Of a stretch of DNA of 64,000 nt, positions 9,194-53,995 are shown piece after piece; positions within the stretch are counted from its first letter, which is position 1, and each line of letters starts with the position of its first letter. The stretch lies in the NCBI GenBank assembly GCA_009859145.1, contig VRVR01000013.1, forward strand, positions 148,786 to 212,785, read 5' to 3'. The translations under genes and the position numbers were made by a program. The stretch comes from Andalucia godoyi And28. Taxonomy: Eukaryota; Protista; Jakobida. The notes under the pieces were generated by a model that was not told the origin of the DNA, made no database searches, and saw only the letters and a list, made by a program, of their open reading frames with translations.

Positions 9194-9825
9194 GCTGCCA
9201 TTTCGCTCCGAGAACCTGACGAGGCAGGTGGCGCTTCGTTTGACGTCTAATGGCCAGCCCCCCCATCAAACTGCTGTTTGTTTGCAAAGGACGGATTATG
9301 GAACCCTGAGGATTGCAATTCTCCCCTTCCTCTCTCTCCTCTCGCTGTGTGTGTGTGTTCGATTTTGTACCGCATTACCCTTTTAGGAGAATTTCCGCAT
9401 CGACTGCTCTATCCGTTGACGTGTTTTCCGCCAATGAGAACATTTCTTGAGACTTTTGCTCGACTGCACTTTATCCTTTTATGGAAGTACAACCTAGCAC
9501 AAGGAATGCCACCTCGGGCACTGACAACTGGATGCAGCACCTGACACTTTTGAAATTCCTCCTGCAAATCACGATTCGCTCCTGGATGCGTGCTGCCACT
9601 GAAATTCAAGCAGGTCGTCAAAACCCTCCCCGTCTTTTGCATCCCGCATGACTACCGCACTGCTTGCGAATACCATTGTCGTATTTTTTGTGGTGTGACT
9701 TTGTTTGTTAGTTTGTTTGTCTGTCTGTTTGTTCCCCCCCCCCACAGGCATCTTCTTCGTGATTCTTTTTCCTGTCCTCAAAGAGAATTTTGTGCAAGAA
9801 CTGTGCACAATCATTCACTCTAGTC

Positions 9826-10986
9826 ATGCATTCTTCTAGTTTCCCCAGCAGTTTCCTGCTCTCAAATTTGCAAAATGCGTCCAGCGTCCCCCAGATCCTC
9901 CTGCCAAACGCTGGATACGGGCAACTAAATCTGACACAGATGTTTGGTGCGCATTCAATTTCACTGGACAGCTCCCATGCTCCACCATGGACCGACAACA
10001 ATGCGCAACTGTTCATTGCACAACAGTCTTTGATTCCCGGTCTTCTTCGCCCAGTCAGCGGCATTGATGTTTGCAGTGCGTCGGATGTTTCGTGCGCAAG
10101 CATTCCTTCGACTTCTCCAACGACGTCTTTTTTTGATGTCAGTTCGGGGATGAAAACAGCCTTTCGATGTCATTCTTCGGCGACGTCACCAAACGTCGAG
10201 AAACGGTCTGAGGGGTTCCCAGTACGCAGCAGCGGCACATCAAGGACCCATCGACCTGTTGCGTGTCTTCAGTGTCGGCTCGTACATCGTTCATGTGATG
10301 GCAGTTCTCCGTGTCTTCGGTGCGTAGAAAAGGGGACCGGACAAACATGCGCGTATCCGACGCGGAAGAAAAAAGGACAGGTTGCTTCTGAAGTTGCTGC
10401 GCTGCTGCGTGTGGACAGCCCGCGAGTGGAGGAAAGAAAAGAATCCCAGCCTATCGAAACCCTCCCAAGAACCCCTTCCGGCACTTTCACGTTGCCTTTT
10501 GGGCAGTTTTGTGTCATCGATATGCAACGTGAATTTCGGAAACGGTTTCTGTCACACTACCAGATTTCCGAGAGCGATCTTGTGGCAGACGATCTCTGTT
10601 TTCGTCAAATTGCAGAGTATCAAACGGTTTTGGATGTAATTCAGGTTCCTGCATTGCTTGCCGTTGGCCCCAAGGTCAAGAGCTTTAACAAGGCAGTGAC
10701 AGATCTTTGTCCTTACAATGCGGAGGAGTTCAATGGTGCTCGATGCCCAATGACTTGGGATCTTATTGCTCCAGAGTCAATCTTGCAGCTCATGGAGCTG
10801 TGTCTTGGTGCGTTTTGCACTCCCGGCAAACAAGTCTTGTCTGCAGTTGTCTCACTACGCGGGAAGAACAATCAGCAACAATGTGCGTCCGTGGCCGTTC
10901 ACATTTTTCACAATAGCGTCGGATTTCCCATTGGCACGTTTACAATTGTCACTCCACTCGACCCGCTTCCCAAGAAGGCCAAGTAG
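9826..10986 (+). CDS. Zn(II)2Cys6 binuclear-cluster transcription factor with C-terminal PAS-like domain
   Basis: ACLQCRLVHRSCDGSSPCLRCVEKGTGQTC has six-Cys Zn-cluster spacing. The C-terminal region (FNKAVTDLCPYNAEEF...LIAPES...GTFTIVTPL) is PAS-like. First ATG at 9826. Confidence 0.85.
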   Translation: MHSSSFPSSFLLSNLQNASSVPQILLPNAGYGQLNLTQMFGAHSISLDSSHAPPWTDNNAQLFIAQQSLIPGLLRPVSGIDVCSASDVSCASIPSTSPTTSFFDVSSGMKTAFRCHSSATSPNVEKRSEGFPVRSSGTSRTHRPVACLQCRLVHRSCDGSSPCLRCVEKGTGQTCAYPTRKKKGQVASEVAALLRVDSPRVEERKESQPIETLPRTPSGTFTLPFGQFCVIDMQREFRKRFLSHYQISESDLVADDLCFRQIAEYQTVLDVIQVPALLAVGPKVKSFNKAVTDLCPYNAEEFNGARCPMTWDLIAPESILQLMELCLGAFCTPGKQVLSAVVSLRGKNNQQQCASVAVHIFHNSVGFPIGTFTIVTPLDPLPKKAK

Positions 10987-26090: not shown

Positions 26091-26951
26091 TCAACAATCG
26101 ACGCATTCCACACTTAGCAGTCCCTGAGTCTTGTACGGGTATGGCATCTTTCCGAACGTGTTGTTGTGGACCTGCACGCCGACCTTTGTTGTGAGGATCT
26201 GCCAGATGTCATAGATGTCCTGTGGGTGTGCATGGAGGCATCCATGGCTGTCTGGCATTGGCTTCGAGGGATCCCAATCTTGCCACTCTCCTGTATGCAG
26301 CAGAATTCCGTTTCGCACGTTGGGGACGGTGAACCGGGCATTTCCGTCAATGCCCGCAACGGCGCGATTCACAGGATAAGGGCCATATTCCTGTGGATCA
26401 GACTCTGGAGAATTCAGATCAAGCGACATCAGCCCAGAAGGCGTGTTACCATTCGATGCAAACTGCGTCAAGTTTGCCTGGCCCTTTGCCCGAACCGTGA
26501 ATGTGTGCAGCACTGCCATGTTTCGGTCGTACAGCGTCGCTTGGACTTCGACACTTCTGTCTTTGCGGACGGGAACATGAACCTTGTACAGAATTCCATC
26601 GGGTAGCGTACCTTTCAGATCGTCATGATACCCATCGTATTCGTACATTTTGTAAAGCAGATTTTGCGTGTACACATCTGCGATGCCAGTCACTGGGAGT
26701 CCTTGGGCACTCTGGAACTGGCGAATGGCAGCTGTCGTCAGACCATCAAACTTTCCGGAAACAGAAAGGCCAACGGGCGCATTTGGCATCCTGCTTAGAA
26801 ACACCTGTAACACATACACCGCATCTCCAGAACCACCCAGCGCCAAATCACTCGAGAACGGAGGAATGTATTCAGGCTTGTCTGCAGCAACCACCAACAA
26901 CAGCCCCAAGCCACAGATAACACCCGTGAAAAATACTGCTCGCAGCAACAT
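26091..26951 (-). CDS. Secreted peptidoglycan-binding (PG_binding_1) plus YkuD/L,D-transpeptidase-like protein
   Basis: Signal peptide; PGBD motif LALGGSGDAVYVLQVFL...GKFDGLTTAAIRQFQSAQGLPVTGIAD; catalytic-type motif ILLH-X15-SHGC. First ATG at 26951; no introns. Confidence 0.82.
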   Translation of the reverse strand: MLLRAVFFTGVICGLGLLLVVAADKPEYIPPFSSDLALGGSGDAVYVLQVFLSRMPNAPVGLSVSGKFDGLTTAAIRQFQSAQGLPVTGIADVYTQNLLYKMYEYDGYHDDLKGTLPDGILYKVHVPVRKDRSVEVQATLYDRNMAVLHTFTVRAKGQANLTQFASNGNTPSGLMSLDLNSPESDPQEYGPYPVNRAVAGIDGNARFTVPNVRNGILLHTGEWQDWDPSKPMPDSHGCLHAHPQDIYDIWQILTTKVGVQVHNNTFGKMPYPYKTQGLLSVECVDC

Positions 26952-27265
26952 GTTTTGCGTGTTTTCTTTCTTTGTCCCTCGGTTGTTAGATTTTGAAAAA
27001 CACAAGCTAATGCGAACATCAAAAAGGACGCGTGAAGGAGGTTATGAACCATGAAAAAAACCAGCATCCATACCAAAAAGGAATCGGCCCAGTCGGGCAA
27101 TTTGATTTTTTGCGGATAGTTTTATCCACTCGGTTGTTTACGACGGGTGCAACGAGGCCTTCGTTTGAACGGACTTTGTCTAAGCTGAATTACACAGGTC
27201 GAGCCCGTAGCGATGTGTAGAGACGAGCGAGCAGTATGCAGTTTTCGGAGGGAAGAGTGGCGAAG

Positions 27266-45492: not shown

Positions 45493-48400
45493 CTAGTTCT
45501 GCTCGGTCAAGGTCGAGAAGTCGATGCCCAAGTTTGCACAGCGAGCGTCGGAGCCAACGAGAGCGTTGTAGGCGGCCGCATTTTTCGGGAATGCTTCAAT
45601 GTCCGAACGCTCCCATCCATCATAGTTGTTTGCGCTCTGGCCAATCGGTCCCGGGATTGTCTCGTCAACGTAATTTTTGAACGTGGCGTCCGTGGATCCA
45701 ACATTTCCGCCGTTGTAATTGTAGTAGATCACAGGAGCGGTGCGCAGAGGGAACGCTGCTCCGCCAAAGTGTGTCGCAGCGGGATCGTCTACATCTCCAA
45801 CAATCGACTTCCATCGGGGAAAGTCTGTCATGATGCCAACTTCCATACATCTGGGATATGCACCGCTGCTCTTGCCGTCCAATAACCCCTTGAGCGTCAT
45901 AAGTCCTGCATAGTTGTTTGCTTGACTGGAAGACCACCCCACCGCATTCAGCACTCTGATGTAGCATTTCATAAGAGGAATCTGTGGCGCTGCATTTGCT
46001 GCATTTTCAAACATTGAAAACGCCGCAGTAAACTGAGCAGTCACGGCTGCATTGACGCTTGCTTCAGTTGTCAGTCCGCTGACACTTGGTTCGAAAATAC
46101 CAATAATCTTCGATTTGTCATATCCAGCAAAAATAGCGTCTCTGATCATGTCAACCGCGGAAGACGACCGAGAACCCACGTTGTTTACGCCCCCTGGGAC
46201 AACAATGTCCACAAACAGATAGTCTTGTGACGCAGAGAGGCAGTTCGACACGGGGTCTTTGTGGAAGGACATGTCGAAAGAATCGAACAGGCTTCTCGTT
46301 CGCACTTGTGTCGAGATGGAAATTCCATACCCATGGTGAACATCGCAAGTGAACTTTGTGTGTTTCGAATATGCCTTGGGAGCCCCCGGAGGTGTGAAGG
46401 ACACGAACTGAACATTGGTGCACGTGATCGGAGAGCAATCGCTTTGTCCGGGGATGCAGTGATCGGAAGACGTTGCTGCCGACGCGGACTCTGTGTTTGT
46501 CAGGGTGACACTGACTTCCGCCGGCAATTTTCCAAAGTGGTCTCCAGTAATTGTGAGCGTTGTTCCCTCCGTCGAACAAAAGTCTCCGTTCGCAAAATCT
46601 GATCTCGAAGAGCAGTTGAAATAACGGATGTCGGGGGCCACGTAGCTGAAGCTTCCACTTTGCGTCATCGTCTGCGAACCAACGGAGACGAAGATATCCT
46701 GATTAATGCCCGTATTTTCCGGCGCGGAGCAAATGACTGTGTGGTGATCAGCGGGATAGTTGGTGGGGGCTCGCGACGCAAACGTGCAGTCCTTTCCATC
46801 AATCTTGAGTACTAGCGCTTCATCGGATCGTCCGAAATTGTGTCCAGACACAGTTACCGTCGTATCGTGCGTGCCGCAAGTGGCAGTTGCGATAGATCCT
46901 CCGTTCCACGCATCGTAGTAGTTGCACACATGAGATACGATCGAAGGCGCTGTGTACGTAAATGTAGTCTGCGGAGACGACACATCGACCTGGCCACCGA
47001 TTTTCAGCTGCATGGGCAGCGAGGCCCCTGCTTGAATCGGGGTGCGGCAGGCGACCTTCACATGAAGGCTGCCAGACACGGGTTCGGCATAATCAGCAGT
47101 ATTGCCACTCGGATCGATAACCATCCAGTTCGGACTGTGGTCGGCATCACAGTATAAAGACCCAATCGAAAACAAATCGACGTCATCGCGAATGGAACCG
47201 AAGTTCACTCCAGAAACAGTAATTGTGTTGCTATCCGTTTCGCAGTTGGAAGAAGATCCTGACAATCCTGCAGATGAGCAGAGATGGCTGTCGATGCGAG
47301 GAGGTGCAAAGGAAAACGATGCAGCCTTTGAAAACGCGTACGTGTCCGTGCGCGTTATCAAAGTCGCGACGGATGTTCCAACCCCATGGAACGTTGCCGG
47401 ATCACAAAATACCGTTCGGTGCTTGAAGTCGTTTGATTGCTGATCGTGGACACAGGTCGGAGAAGTGGAAAGGCTCCATCTTCCTGAGCGAGACAATGAA
47501 ACAACACTGCCAGCGCTGCCAAAATCATCTCCAAAGATCGTCAAGGTGTCTCCGGTTGTTCGGCATAGTTTTCCGGGAGCATCCGCTGGAGGGCCTCCAG
47601 CGCTGTCAAATCCATTTGCAGAATGGTGGTTGAAAGCCTGCGCACCTCCACAGTAAACGTCCTTTATAAACGGGCTTCGGTACGCAAACCCATTGCTCAG
47701 TCGGGCCGTCTGTCCACCAACGGTAATGTCCAAGTTCATAATGCTACCCATGCTGTTGGAAAGCTCCGGCAACCTGCAAGTCACAATCTGATGACGTGCG
47801 GATCCAGTGTCCGGGGACAGGCGAGCGTACGTGGAATGGCAGCTCGTTTCGCCGCCTGCATTGCCCGCATCTCCACCGATCGAGAGAGTCTGCACGTGAT
47901 CCAGATCCCAACCAAAGTTTTCCCCACGGAATGTTATCGAAGACGAACCGTCTGTCCGGCAGTACGCATTCCCAGGACTGGCTTCGGATCCGGACCCCTG
48001 GAGTTCCGCTAAACCATTCGAGCCCGTGGAACACCAGAATTTCGAAATGGTCGGAGGTCGAAAACTGAAGGCGTCTGGCAAGGTGTGGACGGCAGTGTCG
48101 CCCCTTGTCAGGGTAACATCGATGTTGGTCGACACAGCCTCCAGACTCGTGCAAACCAAACCGAAATGCCGGTTTGTTCCGGAAAGAGCAATGCACGATG
48201 TTGGATGACGGACGTTAAAGGTGCCGGCATCTATGGTGACCTTCGGATCCAGTGCGTTTGGCAAAAACTTTCCAAAATTCTTGCCAGTTATCGTCAGTGC
48301 ATCCCCGAATGTTGAGCACAGGTTAATTCCACCTTCCTGCACACATCGAGCAGAGGAAATAATTGGAGCAGCATATGAGAAACTTGCCGCAGAAGATTCT

Positions 48401-51400
48401 GCTTGGTTTCCAACCGTCATTTGTAAAGTGTTGGTGCCGTACTCCGGGCCTTCTGGAAGGATGCATTGAAACGTATCGTCATCAATCCAAACAGCGGATC
48501 CTGTGCAGGGATTCCTGGTGCCCGCATTTCCAACAGATACGCTGTCCAAATTGTGAAGCACATGCGGGAAATTCGTACCAGTTAGCGTGAGTGTTGCGGT
48601 CCCATCGGTAGCGCAATCATTGTCATATTGTCGGGCAACATCCACACTGCATGAGTAAGCAGTGATGGCCGGTGGGATATACGAAAACGATGTCTTGCAG
48701 CAATGACCAAACATTGTTAGTGCACATACTCACACACAGAGACACTTGCATACACACCTGCGCATGTGCACAGACGGACGTGGCAAAAAAAATGGCGACG
48801 CTGATCAGAACAAGAAAACATACAGAAACAGTCTGGGAATCTGCTCGCGTAAACTGAACATCAATATTCGTCCCAGCACCCTTAAAGTTGGAACAGTAGA
48901 TCGTTGTGTGGGCGGAAGCGACGTAGCAGTTGTGCCCAGAAGAAGTGGGAACTGCGCTTCCGGGAAACACCGGACTCAGTTGGGTGTACGTCTTTGGGAC
49001 TGTGCCGGGATCAGACAGATCGATTTTTGGAGCATACTTCCCGAAATTCGTTCCAACAATAGTAATCGTGTCAAGGTGCGTTTTGCAGAGACTGCCCGTC
49101 GAACACGATATGCTTGCGATGGTCGGTTCTAGAGAATCATACAGAATTCATTATTAAGCAAGCAGAGAAATAGAACAACAACAACAACAACAACAACACG
49201 AGAAAAAAGAGAGAGAAAAGAAAAAAAAGAGAATGGAGTGACGAAGCATAAACATTAATATTAAAAAAAAGAACACTCGACATCAAAAACAAAACAAAAA
49301 AAACAAAAAAACATACCTGCATAATGGAAAGATGGCACGGTACCCACGAGATCCTGGTTCCCTATTCGAAGTTCGACAGTGTTTTTCTCGCTGGCATCCA
49401 CAGAAACGCCCTCTGGTAGACTGCAAACAATTTTGCTGTGGGAGGACAACGTGGCCGTAACCGCTGCTATCGGCAGACAGTTCACGGATCCAATCTTCAG
49501 GTATTGCACATTTGTCGCAAGCTGCGGCCCAAAGTTGTCCCCCTCAAACGTAATGGTTGCAGAACCGTCTGTTCTGCACTCCGCATTCTTTTTGGTCATG
49601 ACATCGGACGATCCACTGGCAGAAGTACAAGAGTACTTGGAAAGAGAAGGAGCAATGAAGCTGAACGCCGCGGGCAGCGTTGTCTGCGTCCGAGCGTTGT
49701 CATCCTCGTACGCCCTTTCGTACTTGATAATCACATTCTGCCCTACACCAGTGAAACCGGAGCACTTGACGGTAGCATGGCCGGAAGACACAATGCACGA
49801 AGGAGAAACAGAACCAACGAAGGAAGACGGAAGTGTCAGCGACACCGTCGGTGCGGATTGTCCAAAATTCTTGCCTGTCAGTGTAACCGTATCTCCAGTG
49901 GTTTTGCACAGACCACCAGAGTTGGAGCAGGACGCAGTCTGCAGCGTGACCGCTGCATAGTCAAAATCAATCACACTGGACACCTGCGCCCCCACAGAGA
50001 TTTGCAAATCATTCACTGCTTGAGGACCTTCTGGAAGTGTGCACGTGAGCGACGTGTGACTGACGAGCGCCGCAGAGCTCAGACAGTCGACTCCACCGAC
50101 TCTGACATAGTCAACACTCCCGAGCGTCTGTGAAAACTCCTTGCCTGTCAAGGTTAGTACCGAGGAGCCTGCGGTTCCGCATTCCGGGGAGCACGCATAC
50201 GATGTAATCTCTGGTACCCTGAATGAAAACGCGCTTGACAGAACCGCCGACTTCGCATCAAATCCATTCTGCGTAAACTCAATGCCTATCCCGGTGGATG
50301 CGCCCGTGAATCCTGAGCACTCGATGGTTGTGTGACCAGCAGTACAAGACGTTGGACTGACCGTTGCGTACGTTGCATGAGAAAGAATCAGCGACCCAGC
50401 AGTGTTGCCAAAGTTCTTCCCCACAACAGTCAGTACATCCCCCGATGTCTTGCAAGTGCCACCGTTGCAGGCTGCAGATGTTATCGCCGGACTCTCGTAA
50501 TGGAATGCAACGCCGGACGATGTCTGTCCTCCCACTTGAATTGTAATATCTGCTGTTGAAGGACCTATCCCTGCGGGCAAAACAGCGCGAACCTGTGTCG
50601 AAGAGTCAAAGTACAATGTTCCGGCAAGACTGCCTTGAACAGATACGCTGTCAACGTGAGCCAGAGACGTTCCCAAGTTCGTCCCAACGATCGTTACTAC
50701 GTCTCCGCCATCCGTCCTGCAGTTTGTACTGTCTGTTGCGGTATTTCCATTGCAACTCCACAACGAAATCGATGGTGGAATGAACGAAAATGCGTCTGCC
50801 AGACTACTGGATTGCTGAGGACTTTCGTACGATCGAGTGAGCGTGACGTCAACCAAAGTCCCCACGCCTTTGAAGCCCTGGCAAATCGCCTGCGTGTGGG
50901 AGGGCACTGTGCATGAAGTCGGGTTTACAGCGGCATACGGTGAAGGCAACGAAATGGCCACAGTTGGAGCAGAAATCCCAAAATTGCTCCCGATAATGGT
51001 AAGTGCGTCTCCTTCAACAAGACACGGACTACCACTGCTGCCACAATATGCACCAGTCACTGTGGGAGGTGCATAGTTGAAGTTTCTCGTCGCAAATTGT
51101 GACCCAACGGTGAGCTGAAAAAGGAAAAATAAATTAGTTTGGTTGTCAATGATAACTGGAACACCTCTTAAATCTCAAAAAAAAAAAACGCCATACAGTA
51201 AGAGTGTTCTGCCCATTGGCGGGGCCTGCTGGGAGCGTACACGAAAACTCTGTGTCGGAAGTTACTAAAGCTGCGGATGCTGTGCAGGATACTCCGCCAA
51301 CAGTCATTGCATTGATGTTCGCCAAAGTGTGCCCTAAATTGGTTCCGGTCACCGTTACAGTGGCCGTCCCATCGGTAGAGCATTCTGGAGCGCAAGTGTG

Positions 51401-53995
51401 GGAAGTAAGAGAAGGGCCAGTGAACGTCATTGTCGAGGATGCCGACGCACTATCTCTTGTGCGAACAAACGAGACGGTGACAAGCGTACCGGCTCCTCTA
51501 AAGCCACTGCACACAATGGAGCTATGGCTGGAAGTGCAAGACTGGGGATTGACGAACGTGATTCCGGCTTTCGACAGACTGAATGTTCCGGTCGCCAGTC
51601 CGAAATTCGCCCCGGTAATCGTAACTGCATCTCCGGACGTTGAGCATGACCCGCCGTTGCAAGTCGCGGAAGTAATGCTGGGACCATCGTAGGCAAAATC
51701 GATGGGGCTCGACGTCTGCCCACCACTGTGATCGAAATCTTACGGGTCCCCGCCCCTGGTCCTTCTGGTAAAGACATGGAGATTGCGCTGGCAGAGTATG
51801 CCACCACATTTGCAGTCTCTTCGTGCACAGATCCTTGTGAAGAATGAGAAGATGTGTAGCCAAAGTTCTTCCCGGAAATATGGACTTGCGCTGTGCCAGC
51901 CGTGGAGCAACCGGCAGACGATGTGGAACTTGGAGAAGTTGTTGTGCATGAATAGAATGTGATGGTGGGAGGCGTGTATGAAAATGTCGTCTAATGCAAA
52001 AAAGAAGAAGAAGAAGAAGAAGAAGAAGAAGAAGAAGAAGAAGAAGAAGAAGAAGAAGAAGAAGAGGTGAGCATCAAAAACCAGTCAGCATGATCGGGGG
52101 GGAGGTGGAGTGAGAGGGAAAGAAGAGAAGAGTGGACATACGGATGCTGAAATGCCGTCGCTGCGCGTGAACTCGGCGTTAACACCGGTTCCAGCACCTT
52201 TGAAATTGGAACAGGTGATCACGGAATGCGAGGCAACAGTACAATCTCCAGAACCAGCGTACGAAGTAAATCCGGGACTTTGTTGCGTGAACGTCCCGGA
52301 AAGTACTATCTTTGGTGTCTTGGGTCCAAAATTCTTTCCGGAGATTGTCAAAACGTCGCCAGTAGTAGCGCAGGTCGCGGAGGAACCGGTGCAGGTGAGG
52401 GATGTTATACCAGGGTTTGCATAGTAAAACCCAATTGTATTGGACCCCTGGCCCCCCACGGTGACTGACAATGCATGATAACCACTCTGTCCATCGACTA
52501 GCGGTCCAGCTGGCAGACTGCACGATATCGTCGAATGGCCGCTAACGGCGAGGCCGGACGAGCAAGACGTTCCACCAAGAGAAACAGCAATGTTCGCGGA
52601 GTTGGGTCCAAAATTAGAACCGGCAATACTCACAGTATGTCCGGTGCCGACCGTGGAACACTCAGAACTCGGTCCGGAACATGAAAAGGAGCTCACAGTC
52701 GGAGCAACGAATGAGAAAGCCGCGGCCTTGGAGACCGTCTTCGTGTCAAAGCGTTGGAATGTTATTCCGGCAGTTCCGACCCCCTGGAATCCTGTGCAGG
52801 ATGCCTGTGTGTGAGAGGAGCTCGTGCAGACACCACTTACAGCTCCAGTTCCTGCTGTCGTCAGCGAGAGGGTGTGACCGCTCCCCAGTCCAAGATTTGT
52901 ACCTGTGATTTCAAGGGTTCCGCCCCCGGTCGGACAACCGCCGGAACAAGACGCTGATGTTATGGTGGGACTCCGATAGTAAAAAGCTGTTCCAAAAGTG
53001 GCTGACTGCGATCCTATGTACAACGACAGCGTAGTTGTAGATGATGAAACAAGCTCGGGTAGTGAAGCAACGATCGTTGTCGTCGACGTCAATGACTGCA
53101 CAGCTCCGGCTTGTCCACCAACACTGACCTTGGAGCAGGTCGCCTGGTTGGACACACAGATTGCAGCAATGTCATTTCCGAAGTTGGATCCCGATATGGT
53201 GATGGGGACTGATCCGTCTGTCGGACAAGTAGTTCCTGAACACGAAAATGAAGATATAGCGGGCGCTGCCCAAGAAAAGGCTGTGGAAGAAGTGACACTC
53301 TGACTATAGTATCCAGCCCTCGTTACTGTGGCAGTCACCCCAGTGCCCTGTCCTCTCGCACTGGTGCACGACATCGAAGTATGAGTGTTCGAGCAAGTTC
53401 CAGAAACATGGGTTCCAAAACCGTTCAAGGTCAGTGCCGCAGACGGTCCAAAATTGGTGCCGGCCACAACTATGGTGGCTCCACTCGTTGAGCAGGGCGC
53501 AGTGCAGGAAAGAGAAGTAATTGTGGGGTTTGGAAATGCGGGGAAGGTTGCTGAAGCGCTGACTGAAGTCGATGTGTACATCACTGACATCGTCATGTAT
53601 ATAATGAATTCGTTGTTGATACCGTTGTTCCAGATGGTCGTGGAATACGAAAAGTACAGAACATTCGACGAAGCTCTGTAACAAGTATACGACACAGAAC
53701 CGACCGCGCAGCTATACGTATTCAGATACCAGTTCGCATCGTCGAAACTGGACGTTAAGTACACCGTTCCGGAACTTGTCGTGCAAGAAACGCACGAAAC
53801 GCTCATGGTTACGGTCTCGCAGTTCCCTCCGTACGTTCCATACGGGCAAACGCACGTTTGTGAGTTCAAATAATCGCAGTAGCCTCCTATGTTGTCGTTG
53901 CACTCTGAGTCAAACGAGCAAGCCACAGCGAAGCGCAGCAGCTGCGAAAGCAGAAGGAGGCCCCAGACCAGGCAGCTAACATGCAGACTCCGCAT
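45493..53995 (-). CDS. Giant secreted protein (~2650 aa): signal peptide, EGF-like module, ~22 IPT/TIG-like repeats, C-terminal GH25 lysozyme-like domain
   Basis: Exons 53995-52142, 51990-51197, 51114-49317, 49128-48824 and 48693-45493, all with GTATG donors and AG acceptors. A one-base deficit at ~51723 must be corrected to keep frame. Recurrent GxNFG and FxYxxP motifs. Confidence 0.8.
52004..52063. repeat. (GAA)n trinucleotide tract in intron 1 of the giant gene
   Basis: Read directly. Confidence 0.95.

Follow-up and report, generated by a model that had tools for sequence, protein, structure and literature searches.

The tail of a giant secreted TIG-repeat protein of the jakobid Andalucia godoyi: a conserved orphan domain without detectable sequence similarity to GH25 lysozymes

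TIG-stalk proteins, Ig-barrel enzymes and the Andalucia protein

Extracellular proteins built on stalks of IPT/TIG domains are a known class. In fibrocystin and PKHD1L1, giant IPT/TIG arrays are combined with G8 and PbH1 beta-helix modules and with a C-terminal transmembrane anchor, while in Dictyostelium the class is represented by the adhesion proteins TgrB1/TgrC1 and those of the ComC type. In the jakobid Andalucia godoyi And28, a gene on the minus strand of contig VRVR01000013.1 (assembly GCA_009859145.1), within the window of 64,000 nucleotides analyzed here, encodes a protein in which 22 IPT/TIG domains are followed by a non-repeat C-terminal tail. A preliminary description of this locus took the tail for a lysozyme-like domain of glycoside hydrolase family 25 (GH25) with a degenerate active site. 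What is new here is the tip domain rather than the stalk: as judged by sequence comparison, the tail constitutes an uncatalogued domain family that is real, conserved and very rare in public data.

The protein consists, in order, of a signal peptide, a cysteine-rich EGF-like head, the 22 IPT/TIG domains and the tail of 257 amino acids (aa). Like fibrocystin and PKHD1L1, it joins a long extracellular IPT/TIG array to a carbohydrate-enzyme-like fold, an arrangement presumed to project a recognition module well away from the cell; however, its tip is of the alpha/beta type, its head is EGF-like, and it has no anchor. TgrB1/TgrC1 and the ComC-type proteins are likewise extracellular TIG-repeat proteins of a protist, but they are anchored in the membrane and have no terminal alpha/beta domain, whereas the reverse is true of the A. 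godoyi protein, for which weak Pfam matches to the ComC beta-sandwich and to DUF7498 were obtained. An immunoglobulin (Ig)-like (E-set) domain directly precedes the TIM barrel in several glycosidases, for example GH13 cyclomaltodextrinase and SusA or GH2 beta-glucuronidase and beta-galactosidase, as is predicted for the last TIG domain and the tail. These enzymes have a single Ig domain and their own catalytic motifs, in contrast to the 22 domains and absent motifs of the A. godoyi protein, and the comparison yields template modelling scores (TM-scores) of only 0.13-0.26, root-mean-square deviations of 15-22 Å and no sequence similarity. Lastly, GH25 lysozymes of the Chalaropsis type (Cpl-1 of phage Cp-1, cellosyl, and the LYS proteins of nematodes and Entamoeba) have the topology (beta/alpha)5-beta3. 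They are likewise secreted, are ~200-260 aa long, alternate strands and helices over their first two thirds before a helix-poor end, and would offer a plausible tie to bacteria as food. They possess a D-x-E motif and a strand-1 Asp, while the A. godoyi tail has neither, nor any profile similarity to them. We know of no GH25 enzyme carried on a TIG stalk.

The preliminary description of the protein as giant, secreted, built with ~22 Ig-like domains and lacking a membrane attachment was borne out. The N-terminal signal peptide is the sole Kyte-Doolittle peak above 1.5 in the whole protein; the hydropathy profile of all 2,650 aa showed no transmembrane helix or glycosylphosphatidylinositol signal, and the C-terminus (..STLTEQN) is hydrophilic. 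The head gave a weak EGF-like Pfam match and no significant one, and has an equivalent in the N-terminus of the relative P0002 (see below); it constitutes a second uncharacterised conserved module and may be the end by which the protein attaches. In the repeat region, PF01833 matched three large minus-strand open reading frames (ORFs) in repeated copies above the gathering score (E 5e-28, 1e-27 and 3e-17; 97.3, 96.2 and 63.0 bits, cut-off 20.9), placing the repeats in the IPT/TIG family. Their number, 22, was obtained by segmentation at the F.Y..P linkers. Two subtypes of disulfide-containing, Ig-like TIG domains alternate along the array, one conforming to '...GD.LTI.G.NFG...C.GF.G.G...F.F..P' and the other to '...C.TDG...G.N.G...V.VGG..C...LP.GP...VG.Q.S..F.Y..P', and the array looks like 11 di-domain units. 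Its length is estimated at roughly 80-90 nm.

A rare tail family without detectable sequence similarity to GH25

When 1.84 billion representative proteins were scanned exhaustively with HMMER, six hits were obtained, namely the query, one artefact and four relatives, the last with tails at 34-43% identity. P0002 (2,270 aa; its source, in run SRR15116022, is a Logan contig that resembles a transcript) is collinear with the A. godoyi protein over ~2,100 aa at 38% identity; P0004 (1,610 aa) has a garbled end, and P0003 and P0005 are fragments from JGI metagenomes. All members that extend that far (four homologs) carry the same specialised last TIG domain ahead of the tail. Since four other proteins share the tail with this domain in front of it, the tail is a real conserved unit and not the chance end of an ORF, and because the same TIG domain always precedes it, the unit conserved is best described as the last TIG plus tail. 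P0006, a 2,207-aa bacterial protein of the invasin/intimin type whose 11 Big-type repeats are identical, matched the tail at E 3e-14 and was rejected as non-homologous, because 11 short repeat stretches match query residues 208-255 only and so inflate the significance.

Other searches added little. A word-indexed homolog search with the tail alone found nothing, and with the family profile only the fragment P0005; two metagenome scans, with patterns drawn from the N-terminal half of the domain and from its C-terminal half, yielded no confirmed relative. No Pfam-A family matched the A. godoyi tail at E<=0.1, or any of the five family members at E<=10, and none of the five had a match in NCBIfam or PHROGs, the thresholds across these three collections being E<=1-10. 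Among PDB sequences, the single tail gave two chance-level matches to non-GH25 proteins (E about 1), and the family profile gave none at E<=10. The view that no described protein has this architecture thus held, with no Pfam family and four relatives per 1.84 billion representatives.

The peptides on which the preliminary description was based (FDMS, NCLS, AVDMIRDAIFAGY, IIGIFEP, KCYIRVLNAVGWSSSQANN, MEVGIMTDFPRWKSIVG, PVIYYNYNG, TFKNY and RCANLGIDF) are all encoded on the minus strand in 45493-46290, an interval whose translation shows it to be coding and to be the 3′-terminal part of a far longer TIG-repeat gene. Its proposal of a distinct, conserved tip domain stood as well, but not the start of that domain at FDMS: the non-repeat part begins at FHKDP (46266). 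The eight residues ahead of the tail, FDMS included, are the beta-strand that completes the last TIG domain. This assignment was made because they occupy the F.Y..P position that closes every repeat, because strands 108-114 and 117-123 of the second structural model described below form a hairpin directly before the tail, and because the relatives show FNMS, YSYD or FRFD at this place. Within the tail, C101, C140, E59-P60, W111, YPRC137-140, G157, N183, D201, R220, S221 and E224 are conserved, and position 107 is N in A. godoyi and D in three relatives. Two of the four cysteines are invariant in the conservation table of the family.

Comparison with GH25 was made with a profile of ten diverse phage catalytic domains, Cpl-1 and others from Streptococcus, Lactobacillus, Enterococcus, Arthrobacter and Clostridium phage lysins. 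The latter, which are 28-56% identical to Cpl-1, were collected one by one; a search with Cpl-1 had given only relatives at >=80% identity, too uniform for a diverse profile. The resulting alignment keeps the (V/I)D(V/W)(S/A) and (L/M/D)D(Y/F/W/I)E motifs. Eukaryotic LYS-type GH25 proteins (nematode, Entamoeba) were compared through the Pfam model only. That model, PF01183 (Glyco_hydro_25), matched none of the five tail members (hmmscan, E<=10). In hhalign, the tail family aligned to the ten phage domains with a probability of 0.07% (E 0.68, score 11). The GH25 hidden Markov model (HMM) scored tail sequences at about -2 bits, a value equaled or bettered by 49-61 of 100 shuffled sequences, and in the reverse test the tail HMM scored GH25 sequences inside the shuffle distribution. 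The tail was thereby shown to have no detectable sequence relationship to GH25, and it has none to any other catalogued family; the preliminary classification as GH25-type finds no signal in any of these tests.

The individual motifs fared no better. The segment YIRVL, previously equated with the catalytic WLDIE of GH25 and considered degenerate, reads, in the four members whose sequences span it, YIRVL, YFRIS, FIKVV and FLQIT (by column Y/Y/F/F, I/F/I/L, R/R/K/Q, V/I/V/I and L/S/V/T), with no acidic residue. Because the site is non-acidic in every member, it cannot be called a decayed D-x-E. The supposed strand-1 'xDxS' motif is FDMS, which belongs to the last TIG strand and is not conserved in the relatives, and the supposed terminal 'VD' is not conserved in the family either; neither the catalytic D-x-E nor the conserved strand-1 Asp of GH25 was found in the tail family. 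A second register, shifted by one beta-alpha unit, pairs PVIYYNY with PIYYSY, NYVDETI with NVDYQQI and EAFPKN with EYFPSM, and was rejected as non-significant. The register picked by hhalign is a third one, also non-significant. Since at least three mutually exclusive GH25 registers can be built, collinear chains of motifs evidently arise with ease between beta/alpha proteins. The label 'pseudo-lysozyme' rests on such a chain, which fails statistical tests, and should not enter annotation.

Predicted fold and possible functions of the tail

Two AlphaFold2 runs with five-sequence alignments produced model 1, of the tail, and model 2, of the last TIG domain plus tail. In both, the elements follow one order, beginning with a short helix and continuing with five strand-helix units, to which model 2 adds two strands. 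Model 1 (mean predicted local distance difference test score, pLDDT, 59.7; predicted TM-score 0.66) has a core of ~140 residues at pLDDT 70-90, and its Foldseek list against the PDB (top 50) consists almost entirely of TIM barrels, with probabilities of up to 0.77. Matches include the homocysteine methyltransferase MmuM, tRNA-guanine transglycosylase, endonuclease IV, pyruvate kinase, LeuA, the GH18 enzyme EndoS2 and GH56 hyaluronidase. The TIG part of model 2 matched Ig folds with Foldseek probabilities of 0.99-1.00, and the model also weakly matched the Ig plus TIM-barrel glycosidases of GH2 and GH13. BFVD gave no significant match; xylose isomerase and AP endonuclease were among the entries returned. 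The tail is therefore described as probably beta/alpha and TIM-barrel-like in its predicted fold, which would fit the topology of GH25 and of dozens of other barrel families equally.

We judge it somewhat probable that the tip of this secreted rod is an orphan, lineage-restricted, TIM-barrel-like domain with a likely role in ligand recognition, probably of glycans. In the models, E59, D/N107 and N183 lie where strands are predicted to end on their C-terminal side or immediately beyond, and the conserved D201, R220 and E224 lie nearby. Such polar residues would line the ligand-binding face of a barrel, and a recognition role is proposed because this is the face on which barrel proteins bind their ligands. 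Together with the four cysteines, two of them invariant, they suggest an extracellular folded recognition module. The tail may thus bind a ligand, most plausibly a glycan, and could possibly be a hydrolase. Tens of nanometres of TIG stalk would separate the tail from whatever the EGF-like head attaches to. Candidate ligands include the bacterial wall, polysaccharides of the organism's own cyst, matrix or surface coat, and others.

Several observations weigh against a barrel-shaped recognition domain. Overall confidence is low for both models (mean pLDDT 59.7 and 62.1), which derive from alignments of five sequences. The last ~75 residues, which include D201, R220 and E224, fall below pLDDT 50 in model 1. 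Only seven strands are predicted in these low-confidence models, alternating with five to six helices, and all PDB matches of model 1 have E>=0.02 and TM-scores of ~0.3, for which reason 'TIM-barrel-like' is used provisionally. The fold may instead be a three-layer sandwich of the Rossmann-like or VWA-like type. Lastly, the one-base frame break in exon 2 (Table 1), as read from the assembled sequence, may mean that the A. godoyi copy of the gene is damaged.

The possibility closest to the preliminary description is that the tail is a highly diverged GH25 barrel of the protist/nematode LYS type that has lost D-x-E and serves as a peptidoglycan-binding pseudo-enzyme in prey capture. The predicted order of elements, five beta-alpha units and then helix-poor strands, resembles (beta/alpha)5-beta3, the fold class returned by Foldseek is the TIM barrel, the host is a bacterivore, and BFVD contributes two 'lysozyme' entries with comparatively high, though non-significant, scores (TM-score 0.37, E 0.5-0.8). 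Against this stand the unmatched PF01183, the negligible hhalign probability and the shuffle-level HMM scores, along with the placement of FDMS in a TIG strand, the non-acidic D-x-E columns, the unconserved final 'VD' and the ease with which at least three mutually exclusive registers can be drawn by eye. Furthermore, none of the GH25 structures in the PDB (1H09, 2IXU, 5A6S, 4KRT, 3HMC) appears in the top 50 of either model. A GH25 origin is therefore regarded as unlikely. A different enzymatic reading, that the tail is an active hydrolase (glycosidase or esterase) of a new TIM-barrel family which the stalk presents to an extracellular substrate, would place the catalytic acids among E59, D107, D201 and E224, at positions other than those of GH25. 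It draws on the location of E59-P60 at the end of strand 2 and of D107, in three relatives, at the end of strand 3, on the invariance of D201 and E224, and on the GH2, GH13, GH18 and GH56 glycosidase barrels returned by Foldseek. However, position 107 is N in A. godoyi itself, the surroundings of D201 and E224 are modelled at low confidence, no family can be assigned, and the spacing of the acids fits none of the known clans tested, leaving catalysis of this kind doubtful.

A purely structural role is a further alternative, in which the tail, perhaps a Rossmann- or VWA-like sandwich, would have no small-ligand site and would act in assembly, by oligomerisation or by cross-linking of a cyst wall or surface coat. 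A. godoyi forms cysts. An extracellular, anchorless protein with four cysteines, two invariant, would suit such a role, the matches behind the barrel assignment are weak, and the second-ranked BFVD entry is a VWFA protein. The PDB matches, by contrast, are overwhelmingly TIM barrels, the sole Rossmann match having a probability of 0.10, and the VWA/MIDAS version of the idea was rejected, as the tail has neither a DxSxS motif nor a Pfam match to VWA. We consider a structural tail quite improbable. Overall, a TIM-barrel-like domain for ligand recognition remains the explanation we favour.

Gene model, genomic context and significance

Between 54.0 and 45.5 kb, every stop-to-stop frame of the minus strand encodes the same repeat, and inspection of the sequence showed these frames to be connected by four short introns that begin with GTATG and end with AG (Table 1). 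The nuclear genome of A. godoyi is compact (~20 Mb) and intron-poor, with GT..AG introns averaging 151 bp (PMC7050145), and the introns of the TIG gene match this published type. Intron 1 contains a long (CTT)n microsatellite (~52010-52075, minus strand), and intron 3 has T-rich and (GTT)n runs. The joined translation of the five exons, 2,650 aa, is open save for one frame break in exon 2, where the frame switches and the otherwise flawless TIG consensus (ITVGGQ) runs on in the other frame; the residue at the break was set to X in the joined protein. The break may stem from an indel in the assembly or be a genuine lesion. A tiny intron was rejected as its cause, since the sole GT..AG candidate is 18 nt long, a multiple of three. 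The deposited annotation (P0001, 1,764 aa) takes as its start codon an ATG that is out of frame and lies just past the break; it is for this reason truncated, and the gene is split.

Table 1. Positions of the TIG-repeat gene, its parts and one further gene, numbered along the window
Feature	Position	Strand	Description
Whole gene	45493..53995	minus	five exons; product ~2,650 aa
Exons 1-5	53995-52142, 51990-51197, 51114-49317, 49128-48824, 48693-45493	minus	splice sites in sequence
Signal peptide MRSLHVSCLVWGLLLLSQLLRFAVAC	53918..53995	minus	residues 1-26, classical type; sequence re-read
N-terminal head	53600-53917	minus	aa 27-156: Cys-rich EGF-like stretch plus ~100 aa
Array of 22 IPT/TIG domains	46267..53530 (high end approximate)	minus	aa ~157-2393; four introns within
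One-nucleotide frame break	51724..51732	minus	exon 2, inside ISITV/GGQTSS
Specialised last TIG domain	46267..46632	minus	GDHFG...CIPGQSDC.P..C...HGYG...FDMS; from alignment and AlphaFold2 model 2
C-terminal orphan domain (tail)	45496..46266	minus	257 aa, FHKDP...TEQN; predicted alpha0 + 5 x (beta-alpha) + 2 strands
YIRVL (site equated with WLDIE)	45949..45963	minus	from family columns
Stop codon	45493..45495	minus	from translation
PG_binding_1 + YkuD gene	26091-27005	minus	PG_binding_1 E 8e-12; YkuD L,D-transpeptidase E 5e-5

The neighbouring genes are ordinary eukaryotic ones, encoding beta-tubulin, IFT122, MutS, TRAPPC13, calreticulin and an ABCG transporter. The PG_binding_1 plus YkuD ORF, which is flanked by eukaryotic genes, begins with a hydrophobic signal peptide and contains an H...SHGC motif; it is a candidate for a gene of bacterial derivation. 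Several unrelated eukaryotic genes occupy the 19 kb that separate it from the TIG gene, and as there are no operons here, this proximity is no evidence for a shared 'toolkit'. A functional link between the two genes is speculative, as are peptidoglycan binding and prey capture by the tail. A separate ORF at 9790-10986 on the plus strand encodes a fungal-type Zn(2)-Cys(6) binuclear cluster domain (PF00172, E 1e-6), a type of transcription factor that is unusual outside fungi.

A. godoyi is a free-living flagellate that eats bacteria via its ventral groove, and the ecological guess in the preliminary description, bacterivory, is apt for this host. There is a slim chance that the tail founds a new extracellular TIM-barrel family for recognizing or cleaving glycans, restricted to jakobids plus a handful of uncultured relatives and borne on a ~90-nm TIG filament for prey capture or wall processing; if so, it would be a feeding adhesin without counterpart in the better-studied phagotrophs. 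The tail in any case qualifies as a candidate for a new family in domain databases of the Pfam type. Jakobids are key to reconstructing early eukaryotes, and to our knowledge almost nothing has been learned of how they capture and process bacteria. A stalk of 22 TIG domains with a conserved, uncatalogued tip offers a concrete candidate for a surface or secreted recognition molecule of jakobids.

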